DNA of 64,000 nucleotides from NCBI GenBank assembly GCA_907165135.1, contig OU015566.1:12276001-12340000 (forward strand), read 5' to 3'. Made by a program: the position numbers and the translations under genes. This DNA is from Oikopleura dioica. Its lineage: Eukaryota > Animalia > Chordata. This document shows, in pieces, positions 11,536-23,800 of the stretch; positions within the stretch are counted from its first letter, which is position 1; each line of letters opens with the position of its first letter. The notes beneath the pieces are model-generated. The model did not search any database. It worked only from the letters and a program-made list of their open reading frames with translations, and was not told the origin of the DNA.

Positions 11536-13744
11536 ATGAAAGCTCTCCGGACAAGAGCATACGGGCTCCTGGCGTTTTTCCTTGCGATTGTGCACAATGT
11601 TTTCCTGATTTACCATGTCGATGTTTATGTTTACTCCTACAAGGTTTGATCAAATTTTGAAGACGAAATCGAAACCGATTTTTAGGTTGATAAAGGGTCA
11701 TTCTGGCTCGGAGAAATTATCTTTTTGCTGTGGAACTCGATCAACGATCCTCTTTTCGGATATCTCTCCGACGTCGACCTAGTATCGGAAAATACGAAGA
11801 AGCATTATGCAGAAGATCTCGTTCTACGTCGCCTAAAATCCATTCGCACTTACGGACCACTTTTATGTCTGAGCTTCTTTCTTTTCTGGATTCCCTTTCT
11901 CCCCGTTTGGACCCACTTCGTTGTTGGTATCTGCTTGTATGACAGTTTCCTGACTGTGATGGATTTAAATATGAATTCCTTATTGGCAGATATCTCCTCG
12001 TCGATGGAAGAGAGGACTGCTTTGTCGAAGAGTCGGTCTTTAGGAAATATTGTTGCTTCAATTTCTGTNNNNNNNNNNNNNNNNNNNNNNNNNNNATTAT
12101 TTCAAGGTATGCTATCAGCTAAAATCTGTATCAAAAGGCCTTTAGATTTTCTGTTTCTGTATTTCCGTCTTATCTGGCTTTGGTTTCTTTTTGATTTCTT
12201 CAACCCTCATCCGCCAATTCGAGCCCAAATCATTCGCCTCAGAAGATTCGCAACTTCTACCATCAATTGTTTCAAATATCAAATTGCCTTCGCTCAATTT
12301 AGCCGCTATTGTCGCGGCTTTATCGTACCTGTCGCAGCTGTGCTCGATGCACAACTTTCTGTATTTTGTGATGATGAGCCTGATTCAAGTTTTTCATTGT
12401 CACTTCAATTCAAGTTTCATGCCGCTCTTTGTTGTAAGTATAATTTTCATTTTTCTAGGAGAAACGGATTCTTTTCAGTCATTGCTGCTCAAAGATCATT
12501 TTCCCTCATACTTCTGTCCCCTTTTGATGGGCCTCTCTTTTCTTTTACCGCATCTGAATAACTTTTACTTCCTACGTTTGTGTCAAAAGCAGGGAACGTA
12601 TCATGTTATCCAAGGTAAGCACACTCTTTAGGGGAGAGCTACGACTCGCCGGGATTTCTGGCCGAGCTACGACTTGCCGGGATTAGATGTGCAGAATCCC
12701 GACGAGTCGTAGCTGATGTTTTAGAAACTCTAGATAACAGAACTCTACGGAAGTAAAAAAGTGAAAAATTCGCCGATTATTGTTTTTGTTCGATCGTTAT
12801 TAATAGAATATTATCGAAACAAATATGATTGGCAGTTAAATATTTTTGAACCCCTAACCCTAACATTAAAATAGAAAAATCACACAAATACAAACTTACA
12901 CGATGCTTCAACCAAATCTCACTGTCAAACAACTAAACACACAGTTAAAAACAAAATTTAACAATAAATAATGTCTTCTGTTATAAAGAAAAATATTTCA
13001 AGTAAACTTTCATCAGTTTTGCAAAGCTAAATTTGGTAAAACTTTTATCCTAACCTTTATTTTAGAATGATTGAGGGTATTTATATCAGAATTTCTAGAC
13101 CAGCTACGACTCGCCGGGATTTATTATGCAAGGTCCCGGCAAGTCCTGAAAATCCCGGCGAGTCGTAGCTCCCCGCTCTTTAGTGTACTCCTTGTTGACT
13201 TCAAGATCTTTAGGTCTCTTGGTGATCAAATTTCTCCTCGCATTCGCAGTCTACATCGCCGACGTCAACTTGCTCTGGCTCATCGCTATCTTTATCATGT
13301 CCAACAGAATCTTCACCGAAGGAATTTGCCGACTTTGTGATCTCGTCATCGCCGATTTGATCGACCAGGACTTTGTTGAAAACGACAGAAAAGTGACAGC
13401 CTCGGCTTTCTTTTTCGGATCAACCGCGCTTTTGACCAAGCCAGGCCAAAGTCTAGCGCCAATTATCGGTACCGCGCTGCTTACAGTAGCAGCTGGTTCG
13501 GATGATATCAGAGCGAGGACAGAAGAAGAAGCCCTTACAGAGGAAGATTTTAAGTCTTATTGCTTGGTACTGACAGGGGTGCCGATGGTTTGCTCGATTT
13601 TGCAAATTCTTATTTGGGTAAGCTTCATTTACTGATAACTTACGAGGATCAACCCTCTTTGTTCAGAAACAATTTGATCTGAAAGGAGGCAAGCTCCGTT
13701 ACATAAAATCCGTCCGCCAAAAACAAGAAATCCACTCAATATAA
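11536..13744 (+). CDS. MFSD13A: Major facilitator superfamily protein MFSD13A/TMEM180
   Basis: AYGLLAFFLAIVHNVFLIYHVD; FWLGEIIFLLWNSINDPLFGYLSD; CLYDSFLT; SNRIFTEG; ALLTKPGQSLAPIIG. Exact ATG is uncertain. Confidence 0.9.
12069..12095. other. Assembly gap (27 N) inside MFSD13A
   Basis: Run of n characters. Confidence 0.99.
12631..13175. mobile_element. MITE-2 (about 545 bp) in an MFSD13A intron
   Basis: 22-bp inverted repeat GAGCTACGACTCGCCGGGATTT (12636-12657 / 13150-13171); flanking direct repeat CTCTTTA(G) at 12624 and 13176; further internal copies of AGCTACGACT(C/T)GCCGGGA in both orientations. Confidence 0.88.
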
Positions 13745-13960: not shown

Positions 13961-16546
13961 ATGGATGCTAATAATTACGCTCGGGCAAAATTTGCTTACG
14001 AGCCTCAGAATGCTGATGAGCTCAGCCTCACCAAAGGCGACTATGTTGAGATTTTGAACAGCGAAGAAGAAGAATGGTGGGAGGCCCGTATTCTCACCTC
14101 GAATGAAAGAGGATGGATTCCAAAAGCATACTTGAGGCCGCTCAAAGGACAAAAAGAGCTCGACAAGGTCTTACGTTTACTGAGAAAAAGTCCAAAAGGA
14201 AGAAATTCTGGAGCAGAGCCGGTAGAAGCTGTGGTGCAAAATGACTGGTTCAAAAAAGTGTATATCGAAGTTATCGAAGATTCGAAGAAGTATCTGAGAG
14301 ATGTGGAAGCGATAAGAACAACCTGTGCCAAAGTAAGGGAGGCTCTTGGAGACACGGCGTATGCAGTATCGAAGTTGGAAGCGAGCTCGGATAAACTGAG
14401 GGGAGTTGAAAATCGAATTGTAGAGAGATTTCAACATGATATTGACTCTGAGTCGCCAAGCGCTGGAAGAATCCTAAATGAGGTAAAAGTAACATCATGG
14501 ATTGATTTAACGAAATGTATTAGACACTCGAAGAATACAGAAATGTTTATGAGTCGTATCACATCAACCACCCAACAGCAGTTGACTCCCTCCAACGCGA
14601 GCAACATCACATTCAGAACCTTGATCTCAATGCCATCAGATCATCCTGGGCGAAGCCACTTTTGAGATTAGAAAACTTTCCTTTGAGATTAAGAGATCTT
14701 GAGAAATATTATGGGGAAGCAGATGAGGATAGAAATCTTCTTGGTAAGTTTTTTAGCGAATTTTCTGAAGTAGCCCCCTTTTCAAGCCCGATCAATCTAC
14801 CAAATTGAAGAAGTCCTACTCCAGAAGTGCCAGAGTATAAGGAAAAATAAAGAGCTCGAACTTGCTGTACTCCAGCAGCCTATCAGAAATTGGACTGGTG
14901 ACTCTATCGATGAGCTCGGCTCTCTCAGACTAATGACTCCTGTAAGACCCTTCGACTAGCAACACCTTCTGATTCTTCCTTTAGTTAATGATTCGCGCAG
15001 GTCGCGAAATCAAAGCTTTCAACGGCTATGGTCTCGTCTTTTCATCAGCTATTGTTTTGATCACAGCGACAGATCGCATGTCTGGATTCGTACTCGTTGC
15101 AAATATTCCAAAAGTTAAACTAGCGGTTTCGCGAAAGAGTGACACTTGTGTCGAGGTAGGATTATTTTATGTTCTCTTCCTTGATGTCGATTTTCAGACA
15201 ACTGGTAACGCAGGTCACTTCTGGTTCGTCTTCGAGTCCAAAGAAGATACCGATGAGTGGTGGGGAGCAATGGAAGCTCTCAATGTTCAAATTTCAAAGT
15301 CGCTTTCGACAACCCAAATTCTTCATCCCTCTGATCGATCGAGCTTCTCTGAAGTGAACGGGCACGGACCTCGAAAAAGTCGAGAAAGACCAAGCTATTC
15401 TACTGAGAGCAGTGCTACCCTCAACGTTGATAACAAAAGAAATCCCAGATCAAAATCTGGTAGTCCATTTGCAGTTATGGCACCGGTTAAACATGTTCCC
15501 ATCAGAGTTTGTTGAATATCTAATTCTCTCTATTTTATGATTTTCTTAGACTTCACGAAATCCAGTTGAATATTCTTCATACAACCACAATCAGTCCTCC
15601 CCACCACCGATCAAACTCTGTCCTTCTTCATCAACCTTATCCACAACAGGTATTTGAAGAATGCGCTGTCTTTTGTTTTGCGTTTTCATAATGCATCATA
15701 ATAAAAGAGCAGCAATTTAATTATCTGTTGCTAGCCTCATCAACATTCTGCGCCCGACCGACTCCCCCTTATCGAGCGACATCACCTCGTCCTGCCAGAA
15801 GTAAAGACAGAAAGTCAAAGACGTTCAGATCGAGAACGCCGGAACATCATCGAGAGACGCGGCAGAATGTAAGAAAGATAAATCGGTTTTGAATACAATA
15901 ATACCTCAATGAGGTCATTAACTCCTTGTGAAAAAATTATGGAAAAGTAAAGCCGTTTTTAAGCCCCGAGATCACTCGATAGAAGTGATGGGGATTTACG
16001 AAGCTTACAACTCGACAAACAGAAGGCGGAAAAACTCAGATCCATCTCTTGCTGCCGGTAGAATGAGCCAAATACCGCTTGCGAATCAACAGGCGTTTCA
16101 TCGATCTATGGAAGAGTAATTGGCTAACTAAAGTGCACTTGTAATCATAATTTCTAGCTTGATGGAAATGAAAATATCAATTCTTCGTCAGGAGTTTGAG
16201 GAAAAGTTTGATAAGCTAAGAGAGCGGATAGAAACTGCTGATCAAGATCGATCTGTTTTAAAAGCGACAATCAGGTGAACAACGATTTAAATCGAAGGTC
16301 TCTTAAAAAGACTTCAGAGCGACTCGTAATAATCTACTAGAAGAACAGGCAACAAGGCGTCGACTTGAAGCAAAGATACAGGAGATGATTAATGAAAGAG
16401 ATACACTTGAGCTTCCACCAGGAAAGGGTTACTTTGAAGACTTCAAAGTTTGAAGGTTGAAGTAGCAAAATCTTAGCCTAAGATTCTTTGAACCAGAAGT
16501 AACCAAGCAAGAAAACGCATTCACTTCGCACTCTGAAGACCATTAA
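13961..16546 (+). CDS. ARHGEF7: PIX-family Rho GEF (SH3-DH-PH with C-terminal coiled coil), ARHGEF6/7; 3' end approximate
   Basis: SH3 ARAKFAYEPQNADELSLTKGDYV...WW; DH YESYHINHPTAVDSL; PH FSSAIVLITATDRMSGFVLVANIP (PIX: [24 protein letters not shown]); LLEEQATRRRLE coiled coil. Confidence 0.82.
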
Positions 16547-17022
16547 ATGAAAATTAAAGAAGTACTTCCTCACTAAGAAATCTTCACTAAATAAAACTCA
16601 AAATCACCCAAGTGCTCCAAGTTCACGTGAAAAACCCCTTTTATTACATTTAAATTCAATGCCGCTAATGAATTGAATAAGTTCAGCTTAAAGCTTCCTC
16701 TCCCCTTTTATTTGTGTATCATTTTTTGTTCTTTGGAAGATGGCAAGCTGGATATTTTGCCTTTTTCTGAACCATTTCTTTACCAAATGAAAGCTTTCAA
16801 TTTTATTTCACGCGTACTCGCATTCAAGAATCGCGATTTCAAATCTATTCTATCTGTACAATTTTCTTAGAATCTATCCAACCGCTATCATGTCCTCGAA
16901 AATGACTTATCAAAATGAAATCTTATGCATGTGCTTCAAATCGCCTGTTTTCCCATTTCACCTAAATTCATAAAAAAACGAACAACTGCGCAATCAAAAT
17001 CTAACGATGAACTTTAGAAAAG

Positions 17023-19488
17023 ATGAACGATATCGGAAGAGACCAGAGTCGGGAGGAGACGGAACGAATGCGCGCCAGCTTCGCTGCTGATTTTGCTGGA
17101 ACGATTCGAGTTTATCAAGTGCTCAACGAACGATGGCAAGATAAAGCTCCTCCCTTTCTTTTGCGAAATATTGATTATATAAGAGACAACGATATAAGAG
17201 TAGCGAAAAAACCACCGAAAGAACCAAAAATTAACAAGCCATGCAAGAAGAAGCCAAAGCTAAAATCGCGAATCTCAGACGTAACAGAAAAATTGAAACT
17301 AACCGCACAGCCGGTTCGAACATGTGATTCTATGAGGATATCTCTCAATGGCATCCATAATGTAAAAAACGTCGACGAGAGGGCACATAAAAACTTTGTC
17401 CAGTGCAAGATCAAATTCATCGGCAATACTGCTCCTCACAAACGAAAACCAACGGAAGAGCAAATTTTCAAGACGATCCAGACCTAGGATCGACAAATGC
17501 CCCCGAAATCCGGATCGGGTTTTCGTCGGATTTTCTCGAAGTCTGATTTTTCCGATCGGGTTTTTGTCGGGTTTTCGTCGGGTTTTTGTCGGGTTTTTAT
17601 CGGATTTTCGTAGGGTATTTTTCGGGTTTTTGTAGGGTATTTTTCGGGTTTTTGTCGGGTTTTTGTCGGGTCTTTGTCGGGTTCTTGTCGAGTTTTCACA
17701 ACACTGAAGTTGAATCAAGTAAAATAAATCCAAATGGGGGAAAATAGACATAATTTTTGGCTAACAGAATTTCGGGTACTGTCTTTAATCAAACTGATGA
17801 GTAGATCCGAAGAGAAACCCGACGAAAATACCCTACAAAAATCCGATAAATGACCCTATAAATACCCGATTTTGTAGGGTCGCCAAAATTTCAGCGTCGG
17901 GTTTTTGTAGGGTCGGCAGAATCCAACAAAAACCCGACAAAAACGTCGGTTTTCGATCGGGTGTCGGGTGGGACTTGTCGATCCTAGATCCAGACTGTCC
18001 TAATTTTGAATCCAAAGAAAGGAAGCTTTTCCGAGGGAATACAAATCGATCTTACCGATCTTGAAATGGCGTCCAGAGTTTTGTTTGAATGCCAGTTTCC
18101 TGAAATTACGAAGAATTCAAAAAATCATTCGCCAAGAAAGCGCCAAAAGATAGACAACCATCCTGTAGATTCTCTTCATGGGCTTTGGGTTGCGTACTGG
18201 GGCATTTCTCCGCCTATCCGCGAAGGTGAGCATACGCTGATGCTTGAATCGGGAATCAAAACTGAAAAAGACTCAAAACCGCCGCCAAAGAAAATGGCAT
18301 CGTGGCAGACTTTTGATCAAAATCTCGAAGGGTTACCTCCATTTGGCGTTTCGCAGGAACCGCATGTCTGCTTCAACCTTTCGTGGACCGAGGCGATCAG
18401 TCACTTGCGCAGCGATCTGAAGCGTTCTTTCCTCCCTTCCGCTTGTAAAGACGCAACTCGAGTTCATTACCAGCTCTATTATATGTCGAAATCTCGCGTC
18501 TGTACCCAAACGTATGACCAGCCCCTGTGCCAATTCTGCGAAATCAAGCCAGATCCAGTCGATGCTAGCCGTTACGGAAAACCAGTAACGCGTACTAGAG
18601 TGTTTAAATCCGTCAAGGATCTCATGTGCCACTTGAAAAATTGTCACGATAAATTTGTGTTCCGATCGCCGGAAGAACGAGCCATCAAAGAAGGGCAAGA
18701 GCTCGAAACTGTCTTCATCGAGGTCTATCCGAATCCGAAATATGTGCGGAGCTACCTCGGGAACTCGAAAAACACTCTTGAGTCGCTTCGAAAAGGCGAA
18801 ACGAAGGTGCTTGTCTGGCGCGGTGTTCACGTGGATCCAGACGAAACGTACAACAAGGAATACGAATTCACAGACTGCTCGTTGACTTCTTTTGGACATA
18901 CCAGACTTTACTTTCACACAAGCTACAACTTGCCGATAAGGGCGTGCGAATTCGAGTACGATAGTGAGGACGATCAGTCGCACGAGTTCAACTGGGTTCG
19001 CTCTCACATGGTCAAGCAAATTGATGAATTTACAGATGTCAACGAGGTTACTTTTTATCAGAAGTATTTTGAATAAAATATTATTCAGGATGAGAAATTG
19101 ATCATGAAGCTTTGGAATCATCAACTGATGGTTACTCGTGTATTGTCCCAGCAACAACTTCTTGAAGCATGCAGAACTATATCCAGAAAGTATGGAAAAT
19201 TCATCTACAAAAGAAATGTCCGACGCAATTGGTTGCTTCATCTCCTTAACTTGGTCGACCACTGTCTCTTAAAAGCTTCGGAAGTCCCGAAAATAATGGT
19301 CTTGATGGGTAATCACACTATTCTCTGTTTTTTTTCTACTATTTTTAGATGAATGTGTAAAAGACGAATCAATTCCATACGAAGAACCTGATATTACTGG
19401 AGATAAAGCACATGAGGAAAATCTGAAGAAAATCATAGAAGACTCGGCCAAAAGAAACTGTCATTTCTCAAAGAAAACAGATGCATAA
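17023..19488 (+). CDS. SUZ12: Polycomb PRC2 subunit SUZ12, interrupted by MITE-3 in this sequence
   Basis: N-terminal ADFAGTIRVYQVLNERW..APPFLLRNIDY; zinc finger LCQFC...LMCHLKNCHDKFVF; VEFS box GHTRLYFHTS..LPIR..EYDSED..IDEFTDVNE..IMKLWNH. Start may lie further upstream. Confidence 0.92.
17484..17987. mobile_element. MITE-3 (504 bp, hAT-like) inside a SUZ12 coding exon
   Basis: 13-bp TIR CTAGGATCGACAA (17484-17496) / TTGTCGATCCTAG (17975-17987); perfect 8-bp TSD ATCCAGAC (17476-17483, 17988-17995); subterminal GTCGGGTTTTT arrays and inverted copies. Confidence 0.95.
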
Positions 19489-19655
19489 AATCCTGTTCAT
19501 TCCGAACGTAGAAACTCACACTGCCTCTCTGCAGACAAACTACAGCCTGACTTATGGCCCATAAGTTGTGGCCTAAACACAACTGCCCATTATCACCCTT
19601 TTTACAATAAAACGAACGAAGAAAAAAAGTTCATTTGCGTACTCTTAGATACAGG

Positions 19656-20776
19656 ATGATAGGGCGACATGTGCGGACGTTGAGTTCAAGTGCTGTCCAT
19701 AAATTTCGAGGGCATGGAAACGCGATGAATTGGTTCGCGCCAAACATTACTCCGGAAGCGAAATATCAGAGGTGAATCAAAAATTCCAAAATGAACATTT
19801 TCTATGACCAATGAATTTTTCGAAGATCAAATAAAAATGCCTGAACAGGACCATTGTACGTTGTTCATTTCATTTGTACGTCTGTCATTTAGAAAACAAT
19901 GGCTACACAGCCTCGAGAAAAAGCAACACAACGACATGGGCGAGTGGTCCAAGAAGAATAATATGATCTATCCGCCCTTAGAAGAGGGCCAGCCTCCCCG
20001 ACCTCATGAAATTTATTGGGGCAGAAGCAGAGTAGCAATTTCAAAAAGAGTCATGGCAAGAACTTGGTAAGTTAGTGTGAAAATAAATGCTCGAAATTGA
20101 GCTTGACATTCAGTTAAATTTCTGTCATATTGTTAACTACGCTAACATGGTTGTTTACAGCCCCTAATGCGGCTATAAACTCCTCACGAGTTGTTTAAAT
20201 TGTCATGATAAAGGGCAGACACAGAATACGCGATTATCTCGCGTTGTTAATAATACGATTTGTGTATTGAGAATTTTCCTCTCTGAAAATGAGATTTTTT
20301 GAAATCAAGGAAGACTAACTTTTGGATTTTTAGTTTGACTGTGAACAATTTGGAGCTACAAGATGCTCTGGACAAGATGTACAACTTAAAAGCGCGCGAA
20401 GGATTTATTGTGAGTTAGCGACGTCCCATCAATCAGCCAAAAATGAACGTTTGCTTTCTTTTCAGATGTACGAAATTTTACGAGAAGCTAGAGACTTTGC
20501 CAGCAAGCGGGCCCCGAGCGCAAGCACGTTCCACATCGCTGAGTGCTGGGCAACAATCTTGAACAGAGAGTATAGACATGGATATGCCATTTTAAGGTTT
20601 GCCCTTATCAAAAACTTTTTTCATAAAGAAATTTTAGAAAACGCGATTTAACAAATATTTATGTGCTCTTGCGCGAAGGACCACCCCCACCCGAGCGAAC
20701 AAAGTTGACAACAGAAGACGCCATTGATCACTATCTTCAAGGGCATAGAGAGAAAGAGATTCCTTTTACTTGGTAA
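19656..20776 (+). CDS. MRPL22: Mitochondrial ribosomal protein L22
   Basis: WSKKNNMIYPPLEEGQPPRPHEIY matches [38 protein letters not shown]; presequence-like N-terminus. Confidence 0.85.
20299..20314 (+). repeat. Dispersed motif, copy 2 (MRPL22 intron)
   Basis: TTGAAATCAAGGAAGA read directly. Confidence 0.9.
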
Positions 20777-20815
20777 ACAACTTGTTACATAAGTTTTGAG
20801 TGTGTGTTTTTCAGA

Positions 20816-23800
20816 ATGCCTACGAGCTCGCGGGGCGATAATCGAGCCTCGCGGCCTTCATCAGCATCGAGATTGTCCCAAGCGCGCGGTACCAGCAGCA
20901 GGAACAATTTGGGATCAACAGGTACGCCCTTGAACGCAAAAACAAAACCCTAAATTATATCAAGGCGGCATCAACTCCGGCAGCAGCGAGAACATAAAAG
21001 CGTTGTACGAAGCTTCACCTTCTCGTGGCAGGACTGAGAGGCCCATTTCCGGCCAGAAGACAGCGAAGACAGCTAAGCCCGGTGTCGTCAAGGCGCCTGC
21101 AAGCTCTCACATGCGTGGTGGAAAGGTACCTTCCAGCAAGTCGACCGGCGCCAATTCGAAAGTACCCGCTCAAGGGACGGCTCAGCGACCAAGGAGAGAT
21201 AATAACGAAATGGTTCGAAATGAAGGAAAGGGTCATTATTATCAAAATGATTTATGAGATTCGAGTCTGTTTTAGCACGGAGATAAGGTCAAACAGAACC
21301 TTATCATGGCGATATTAACAGGTTCAAGTCATATTTCAAATCGCTTTTTCGTAGAAATATAAAATTTCGAAATATTATTTTTAAAAATGTTGAATACCCC
21401 TTCAACTGAAGCTTACCGAAGCCAACAAGACGCGATCGAAGAGCTCAAGACTCAATTCGCGCAGCTACAGGCTCAATTTCTGTCTACACAAAAAGAAGCG
21501 ATTACACAAGAAAACGAGCGACTGAAAGACCAACTTGCAAGGGCCGTTTTGAATTTGCACAAGCATTAAAATCGCCTCGTAATGAGTGAAGTTTGAGCTT
21601 GATAGCGCACTTATGGTGCTACAGACATCTGAACTCAAACAAAATTCAAAGACTATTTTTGAAGCTTTCGGGACTCAATTTTTGGAATTTGAAAATATTT
21701 TGAAACGGAAATAGTATGTCGAAAACGATGGCAAACATCAACTACAAAGAGAACTTCAAAAGCAGCGCTCCAGTAGATGGCATGTCCACCCCTGACTCAC
21801 TCTCCGATCAAGAGAATTCGCGCAATCCCTCAAGCTCAAGCAAAGATAAGAGGCTTTCGATAGCGGAAGAATTGGATGCGACAAAAGACGAGCTGCAAGA
21901 GGCACAAGATCGCGTCGCCCAAGTTGTGACTCAGGTGAATTCTCGTTTCTCCGGCGCCACTCATATTCATTATCAGTTGATATCTTCAATGCTTACTGAC
22001 ATTGAAAACAGTTAATTCGCTCATTTTTCTCAAGAGTTAAACTAAAAGTTGTAAAATTAAAATGGTAAGCCCTGTTCTGTTTTGTATTTTTTCCATGAGA
22101 AGCAAAGAGTCGATCCAGTAAATCTTACAATGAGCTCTTTATGAATTATTTATGTAGTTGAAGATTAATGGGAATCAATAGTGCTATTTTTCGCGCTGAG
22201 CGAACAACTCATATTTAGCGATTGCTTCTATCTTAGCGCGGATTACGCCGAGCAAACTTATAGGCCCCGATCGTTCGTTTTTCCTAGCGCAAATCGATTC
22301 TTTTCTCGCCCCTGAGAAATTATTGAGATTTATTTAACGAAAATCACGCGAACAAGACGAATATATTTTTCAAAATATTGAACCACCAAAAGGCAAAATA
22401 ACGATACATCAATTTAGAACGCTCATCTGAAGAGAGAACTACAGGACTTCAGTAACAGAGTGAATGAAAGCCTTGTGCATCCTCCTCCAGGTAATTCATA
22501 CTGATATTAATTGTTCATCAATCAAAAGTAGTAAAAATTGAAATCAAGGAAGACTCATTTCAAAATCATTTTCCCTCTAATTATTAAAGTTTATTAAAGT
22601 TTATTAATTTTCTAGAGCTACTTTTGAGCAACTGTTTGCTCGAACAGACAGAGATAGTTTTCCTTTCTTATCATTTTTCTCATAAGTAAGCTTCATCTTT
22701 TGTGACTATTCACATGCGTAGAAAACGAATTTTAATCTGTCTTTTGCAGATTTGAGCCTGGCTGAGCGCCTTACAATCGTCCTGGAGGGTGGAACAAAAG
22801 CAGTGCAAGGGCTTCAACGCCAACTTCAGTAAGTCAAAGCCATCCTACTTCTCAGAGAAGAGGCCTAAGAGTGTGTGTGCCCAACAATTCAGAGCAATTT
22901 GGGCGAATTGATATGTGCTCCTTTTGTCCCTAATTGAATTGAAGTCGAAATTGGACATCGCATTATGGAATCTCAGACTCAGAGTAATGGATCTATTTCT
23001 TTTAGTGACCAGGAGGAAGAGAATGAGGGAATCAAGCGGGAAATGGCTGAGATAAAAAGTAACGAAACTCCAGAGGTAGTTACCATCATTTGTTGTTGAA
23101 CCATGTTTGAATTCAGGCACATGAGTTGAGAAACAGAATCGAAGAGCTTGAAAGCCAGTTGAAAAGCTTCCAAAGCGACTACGCAGATCTCATGCAAATG
23201 GATCAAGCAGATCGAGAAGCGACGCTAGAAGCGATCAAACTCAAGTATCTGAGGGAAAAGGATATTCTCATTGAAAGAGAAGAGACCATCCAAGCACTTC
23301 AGGTACCTTTAAAAATATTACCAGTTTTGAGTCAGCTGTGAAATAAGGAGGAGATGTTTGCAAAAGACAACGACCATCGTCAAGATCTTGAAGAGCTCTC
23401 GAAATTTATCGATGAACTGCGCAGCGAACGATGGAAGAAGGATCAAGAAATGGACAAGCTTTTGAATCAGCTGATTGATCTTGAGGATGCAGTCGAGCAG
23501 CAGATTGCTGTGAAGGTAAACCAAAATCGCCCTTTCGATTTTTCAATGTTTTAAGCAATTTGCGGAGCACGAGCGAAAACTGCTCCAAGAAGAAGTCAAC
23601 GATCTCAATGCCCAAATTGTCGAGCACAACAAAGAACTGATCATGCTCAAACGAAAAGCTGAAAAGTCAGAAGAGGATAAAAACACCCTTCAACAAGACA
23701 TGACGTCGGCCATTACACTTGCCCAGGATGCCAAAATAGCAAAGGAAAATGAAATTCGCGAGCTTCAGGTTAGGTCGAATTCTTTTTGGACGCGTCCTGA

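Follow-up and report, generated by a model that had tools for sequence, protein, structure and literature searches.

The stretch of DNA analyzed here, called the window, is 64 kb long and lies on chromosome 1 of OKI2018_I69, the reference assembly of the Okinawan Oikopleura dioica. The assembly is Nanopore-based; its source was one male from a laboratory culture, with a heterozygosity of about 3.6%, and the two haplotypes were merged by HaploMerger2 (PMC8008620). A 9.4-kb piece of OU015566.1 in GCA_907165135.1 matches window 14066–23488 letter for letter, so that the window begins at about position 12,276,001 of that contig. Gaps or masked letters are limited to a run of 27 N at 12069–12095.

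The gene of interest is SUZ12, which is read on the plus strand and has a coding exon that is interrupted by a transposable element. The part of the exon 5′ of the insertion (17023–17483) is an open reading frame starting at the ATG at 17023. It comprises 153 complete codons and 2 nt of a T codon, to which the element's first base adds the third, and it shares 99% identity with the N-terminal part of P0001, the protein of an allele that lacks the element. The remainder of the interrupted exon (17996–19046) holds the zinc finger region and the start of the VEFS-box. There follow a true GT-AG intron of 42 nt with a T-rich 3′ end (intron 1, 19047–19088), an exon in which the VEFS-box continues (19089–19308), a second true GT-AG intron of 40 nt, also with a T-rich 3′ end (intron 2, 19309–19348), and the last exon (19349–19488), which ends in a TAA stop codon at 19486–19488. 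With these 42- and 40-nt introns, the exon set yields the public protein P0002 exactly.

The interrupted gene is SUZ12. In the piece downstream of the insertion, Pfam finds the VEFS-box (PF09733) with an E-value of 8.9e-10 and a score of 39 bits, above the cut-off of 23, and the same piece matches human SUZ12 chains with an E-value of about 3e-13. The VEFS-box binds EZH2. The SUZ12 zinc finger (PF23320) is matched weakly in the downstream piece, at 21.1 bits against a cut-off of 28; a precomputed domain table lists this domain in the orthologues P0004 and P0005. The original prediction, made from the letters of the window, had placed both domains beyond the insertion; the VEFS-box is found there, as is the sub-threshold match to the zinc finger. 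The N-terminal half aligns too weakly to human SUZ12, so that no domain is named at the insertion point.

The public gene models reflect the interruption, as follows. The downstream open reading frame is 100% identical to Oidioi.mRNA.OKI2018_I69.chr1.g3341 (P0002, 446 aa), a SUZ12 model whose start is the ATG at 18066 and which retains the VEFS-box. Upstream, the public model (window 14066–17487) is more than 928 aa long and contains SH3 and RhoGEF domains. Its CDS ends at 17487, a position that coincides with a TAG inside the left end of the element. That is, because of the insertion, the N-terminal SUZ12 exon has been fused to the upstream RhoGEF/SH3 model, making that model chimeric.

A MITE within a SUZ12 coding exon

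The element is 504 bp long (17484–17987) and is bounded by perfect 13-bp terminal inverted repeats (TIRs). The left TIR, CTAGGATCGACAA, is at 17484–17496 on the plus strand; the right TIR, at 17975–17987 on the minus strand, is its exact reverse complement, with 13 of 13 positions complementary. The two TIRs are the sole 0-mismatch matches to this sequence in the 64-kb window, where matches with one or two mismatches occur at chance level only. Flanking the TIRs are two copies of a perfect 8-bp target site duplication (TSD), ATCCAGAC, the left at 17476–17483 and the right at 17988–17995. The window has two copies of ATCCAGAC, and each of two empty alleles, those of contig L001 and of a contig from sample X2, which are described below, has one. 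By coincidence, the final G of the right TIR continues the TSD, so that the direct repeat is 9 nt long (GATCCAGAC). The TIRs and the TSD had been called in the original prediction, and direct reading and a repeat search both bear them out. So does the reading of the TAG at 17485–17487, which is in frame and closes the frame from ATG 17023 after 154 residues. At the other end, the CTAG of the right TIR puts a TAG (17985–17987) in the downstream reading frame.

Inside the left TIR lies an array, found by repeat search, of about 15 subterminal 11-bp units with the consensus TCGGGTTTTTG (17513–17700). Inverted copies of the 11-bp units are present on the right arm, at about 17815–17945. The element's open reading frames are only 53–79 aa long and are read through the 11-bp repeats; there is no transposase gene. 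Folded as RNA, the element is predicted to form a single long hairpin closing at the TIRs, with an energy of −206.6 kcal/mol and a z-score of −8.1.

The window contains no second copy, as blastn of the element against its 64 kb finds the element itself only. Copies elsewhere are indicated by two sets of public DNA data: X1, a run with contigs from an independent short-read assembly, and X2, another sample of the same study. In both runs, contigs with unrelated flanks end at 17482–17484 and at 17987, and depth in the interior of the element is several-fold above that of the flanks. Thus, the element belongs to a multi-copy family. Its ends are fixed by the same data, since the flanks of the other copies break off at 17484 and 17987. 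With its TIRs, its TSD, its small size without a transposase and its multiple copies, the element is a non-autonomous TIR element of the MITE type. The 8-bp TSD, the short TIRs and the opposed subterminal arrays suggest that it is hAT-like, although its terminus, CTAGG, does not fit the hAT motif YARNG, and an 8-bp TSD can also come from P and Merlin elements.

Several further observations concern the element's relatives. In one contig of X2, 17679 is connected to 17924 by a filler of AAT and 244 nt are skipped; the contig probably represents a member of the MITE family, elsewhere in the genome, that has lost part of its interior. At two interior positions, every X1 contig there differs from the window: 17691 is G rather than A, and 17863 is A rather than T. 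Either X1 shows only paralogues at these positions, or the reference carries polishing errors within the repeat. A 16-mer of the TIR was also matched in public metagenomes at 120 loci or more, but these loci have nothing else in common with the element and were rejected as chance matches.

Filled and empty alleles

The insertion is present at this site in DNA other than the reference. X1 contigs agree with the window in every letter between 16300 and 17511, a position inside the element, and again from 17959 out to 20300, so that both filled junctions are crossed with 0 mismatches.

Alleles without the element also exist. A 223-nt contig of X2, with a depth of 10.5, joins 17474 to 17987 with 512 nt skipped and 9 ambiguous letters at the joint, which is an exact empty site. 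A second empty site is found in L001, a 3.5-kb contig of a Tara Oceans metagenome (PRJEB4352). L001 aligns to window positions 15905–17483 and 17987–19974, and the two alignments share 9 nt of the contig. The element is missing from L001 and GATCCAGAC occurs a single time, again an exact empty site, and the downstream identity of the contig to the window is 98.7%. Because the sequence of L001 continues through intron 1, the contig is genomic DNA and not cDNA. The empty site, for which a check of other haplotypes and populations had been proposed, is thus present in X2 and in L001.

The open reading frame called on L001 encodes P0001, which in the protein search reads ...QIFKTIQTVLILNPKKGSF... 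without a break. It had been predicted that deletion of 512 nt, the element plus one TSD copy, would fuse the two open reading frames, and the joined reading is indeed the product of this natural allele. P0001 and four other orthologues, P0003 (72% identity), P0004 (46%), P0005 (38%) and P0006, all read through the site uninterrupted, and the residues there belong to a conserved T-V/I-L-x-LNPKK motif. The 154-aa N-terminal piece was used as a query for proteins truncated at the junction or spanning it, and only two short ENA fragments were returned; P0006 is contiguous.

Compared over 504 codons, the filled allele and the empty one from Tara show 18 codon differences that are synonymous and 2 that are non-synonymous; other lesions are absent. 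These counts, and the lack of another lesion, indicate a gene under purifying selection and an insertion that is young. The X2 empty allele departs from the filled one at 16735 and 18395, with no difference in the roughly 180 nt next to the site. The X2 contig is short by one letter at 18119, 18265, 19328 and 19622, two of these positions being within the SUZ12 exon. As the frame of the window agrees with that of the Tara allele, the one-letter losses look like errors of the read technology and not like frameshifts. The 1-nt homopolymer gaps suggest that X2 is derived from long reads.

To summarize, the insertion is real, its ends are defined, it is polymorphic, and it breaks the SUZ12 frame. 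The original prediction of a recent, polymorphic insertion therefore stands, with the empty site in X2 and L001 and with the perfect TIRs and TSD. A rare heterozygous state, which that prediction had named as counting against the intron model, is not shown, as X1 has filled junctions only.

Consequences for SUZ12

We favor, with moderate confidence, the view that a young and segregating MITE copy has created a loss-of-function or hypomorphic allele of SUZ12 and that the element is not an established intron. Events would have run as follows. The inserted copy, which still segregates in the population, belongs to a multi-copy family of non-coding elements that would move by cut-and-paste. Transposase supplied in trans, presumably acting by a hAT-type mechanism, would have cut the first SUZ12 coding exon in the Okinawan lineage with a stagger of 8 bp. 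The 504-bp element would have been pasted into the cut, and the ATCCAGAC duplication would have been left behind. Provided that the element is not efficiently spliced, as we infer, translation from ATG 17023 would halt at the TAG of the left TIR after 154 residues, giving a truncated product without the zinc finger and the EZH2-binding VEFS-box. A product lacking these two parts is the reason for reading the allele as loss-of-function or hypomorphic, and some phenotypic effect would be expected. Both exon halves are intact on the carrier haplotype, which counts somewhat against a broken gene but which a young insertion predicts as well. In our judgment, the case is that of an ordinary young transposon-insertion allele.

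A simple null allele is put in question by zygosity. X1 is letter-identical to the window and has filled junctions only, contigs of this kind being evidence of presence and not of absence. The X1 contigs pass the point at which an empty allele would branch off, which suggests that the sampled animal or pool was homozygous or that the insertion was nearly fixed in it. Neither homozygosity nor near-fixation would be expected if an allele of this core PRC2 gene were recessive and lethal. The filled-only state of X1 hints that carriers tolerate the insertion, and the X1 data, read literally, mean that carriers reach adulthood. HaploMerger2, which may by default prefer the longer allele, could have loaded the reference with heterozygous insertions; filled junctions alone in X1 at this locus would not be explained in this way. 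Tolerance could come about through maternal PRC2, through a shortened SUZ12 made from ATG 18066, or through removal of the element from RNA. For this reason, a sizeable probability is kept on the two alternatives in which the insertion is tolerated.

The first of these is that the truncation itself is tolerated, and we give it a low but appreciable probability. A transcript that starts in or after the element, or is trans-spliced there to a spliced leader (SL), would be translated from ATG 18066 into an N-terminally shortened protein that retains the zinc finger and the VEFS-box and provides enough PRC2 activity. SL trans-splicing is widespread in O. dioica, and in mammals the VEFS region alone supports EZH2-EED catalysis. 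The public protein P0002 starts at 18066 and keeps the VEFS-box, and the X1 data fit as well; however, the g3341 model from which P0002 comes may be mere salvage by the gene predictor. Against this alternative are also the 170-odd residues that would be lost. They are conserved among Oikopleura orthologues, for example in the AGTIRVYQVLNERWQDK and MRISLNGIH blocks, and are therefore under selection.

The second alternative is that the element is a nascent non-canonical intron, and it is, in our estimate, unlikely. Here the element and one TSD copy would be removed from the pre-mRNA, and full-length or near-full-length SUZ12 would be made. The sites would be AT..AG (17476–17987), AC..AG (17482–17993), or a cryptic in-frame pair, for example GA at 17455 or 17458 with AG at 17987 or 17993, with help from the hairpin. 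Several points favor this alternative. Two of the registers for exact excision end in AG, and in-frame GA..AG pairs are present. The hairpin closes at the TIRs with the predicted stability given above and would bring the duplicated sites together. X1 is filled-only. Donors other than GT make up 11–12% of those of O. dioica and are tolerated (PMC8008620, PMC7072748), and MITE-derived introns have been documented in another larvacean (PMC13326754, PMC11282704).

The splice signals themselves argue otherwise. Ten registers give exact excision of the 512 nt, all with one and the same mRNA, as follows: GA..TA, AT..AG, TC..GA, CC..AT, CA..TC, AG..CC, GA..CA, AC..AG, CC..GA and CT..AC. As the original prediction held, only AT..AG and AC..AG end in AG, and none starts with GT or GC. 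Among the ten, there is also no pair with a G start and an AG end. Two AG ends among ten registers are about what chance gives; by our estimate, at least one is expected roughly one time in two. No pyrimidine tract precedes either AG, the preceding letters being GTCGATCCT and CTAGATCC. The nearest in-frame pairs with a G start are the GA..AG pairs named above, and their use would cost 6–9 conserved residues. The nearest good-looking GT, in GTAAAA at 17362, would cost 38 residues. The form seen in Fritillaria, with an AG start, an AC or AT end and YAY, is absent from the exact registers, and there is no YAY at either border; the nearest AG..AC or AG..AT pairs would cost at least 7 residues. In Fritillaria this form is linked to a U2AF duplication that is lineage-specific (PMC13326754). 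The non-canonical introns of O. dioica are chiefly GA-AG (PMC7072748). The median intron of the species is 49 bp (PMC8008620), and the element is ten times longer than the norm. As judged from the letters, then, splicing of the element finds no support. Its most literal form, that is, AT-AG or AC-AG splicing at the duplicated site in homozygous carriers, with no pyrimidine tract and by way of a hairpin of about 500 nt, appears quite improbable to us.

The public annotation, which used RNA hints, found no intron at the element, the upstream CDS ending at 17487 and SUZ12 beginning at ATG 18066. Of the words of the SUZ12 gene, a fraction of 0.00 is present in the indexed RNA runs of the species. 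Two poly-A RNA runs, X19 and X20, were matched at 90% likeness. Their reads fall on the neighboring gene only (19650–20070), with 90–95% likeness and none on SUZ12. About 20 differences are fixed in every one of these reads, which indicates that the runs come from a different cryptic lineage under the same species label; they are silent on this allele. In the neighboring gene, a 121-nt GT-AG intron (19770–19890) is supported by 30 reads in X19 and 44 in X20. A few X19 and X20 reads match the 11-bp array only (17559–17596) and continue in unrelated sequence on both sides, and are thus from a related repeat inside a transcript of the divergent lineage.

Finally, the chance that the element is at this place in no animal, being an artefact of amplification or, as the original prediction had allowed, of assembly, is negligible: the Nanopore reference was merged from two haplotypes (PMC8008620) and differs at 17691 and 17863 from every X1 contig there, but short-read contigs of X1 span both junctions without a mismatch, and where empty alleles have the 8-bp site once, its perfect doubling in the window bears the mark of transposition and not of misassembly.

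Some practical points follow. In the reference for Okinawan O. dioica, SUZ12 is broken, and the public annotation splits the gene. For PRC2 work on the Okinawan strain, the empty allele is preferable. Since the insertion segregates, empty alleles will contribute a "512-nt junction" to RNA from pooled animals, and this junction is not to be read as splicing. The same caution extends to any similar exonic MITE in the O. dioica genome. O. dioica is a cultured animal with a generation time of 4 days. As filled and empty alleles coexist in such an animal, crossing offers a direct test of whether a fresh transposon without canonical sites is spliced. If AT-AG or AC-AG removal were true, a chordate intron would have been caught at birth, while still polymorphic, and exonic MITEs elsewhere in the genome might be neutralized in the same way. 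The practical value of the locus lies in the quality of the reference annotation, in the caution about pooled RNA and in a tractable cross.

Comparison with known systems

The favored reading, a segregating MITE allele, has its counterpart in maize. Ds and dSpm insertions are reported in exons of wx and adh1, and some are said to be partly spliced out through cryptic sites. As in maize, a non-autonomous TIR element with a TSD sits in an exon, breaks the frame and segregates against an exact empty site. The SUZ12 case differs in its host, a very compact chordate genome.

As to the type of element, hAT MITEs share with it the 8-bp TSD, a short TIR, here of 13 bp, and short subterminal repeats that are opposed on the two arms, whereas the CTAGG terminus departs from the usual YARNG.

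Among larvaceans, the MITE introns of Fritillaria borealis are the nearest case (Soo et al. 2026, PMC13326754; Henriet et al. 2019, as cited in PMC11282704). The ends of its introns are for the most part AG/AC and AG/AT, and YAY triplets stand ahead of the 5′ site and at the 3′ end (PMC13326754). The introns are fixed and RNA-supported, and are processed with lineage-specific U2AF paralogues (PMC13326754, PMC11282704). In common with them, the SUZ12 element is a TIR element in the coding sequence of a larvacean and is without GT-AG ends. Unlike them, it is also without the AG/AC-AT ends and YAY, and its host species is O. dioica.

The introners of Micromonas, Aureococcus and others provide a further comparison (Huff et al. 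2016; Gozashti et al. 2022; reviewed in PMC11282704). An introner brings one canonical splice site with it and obtains the second from the TSD; introners have hundreds of genic copies, and their splicing has been shown with RNA (PMC11282704). In contrast, no register of the SUZ12 element gives a canonical pair, and one copy was studied. The likeness to introners is that of a short DNA transposon with TIRs and a TSD, placed in an exon, where exact loss of the element and one TSD copy restores the reading frame.
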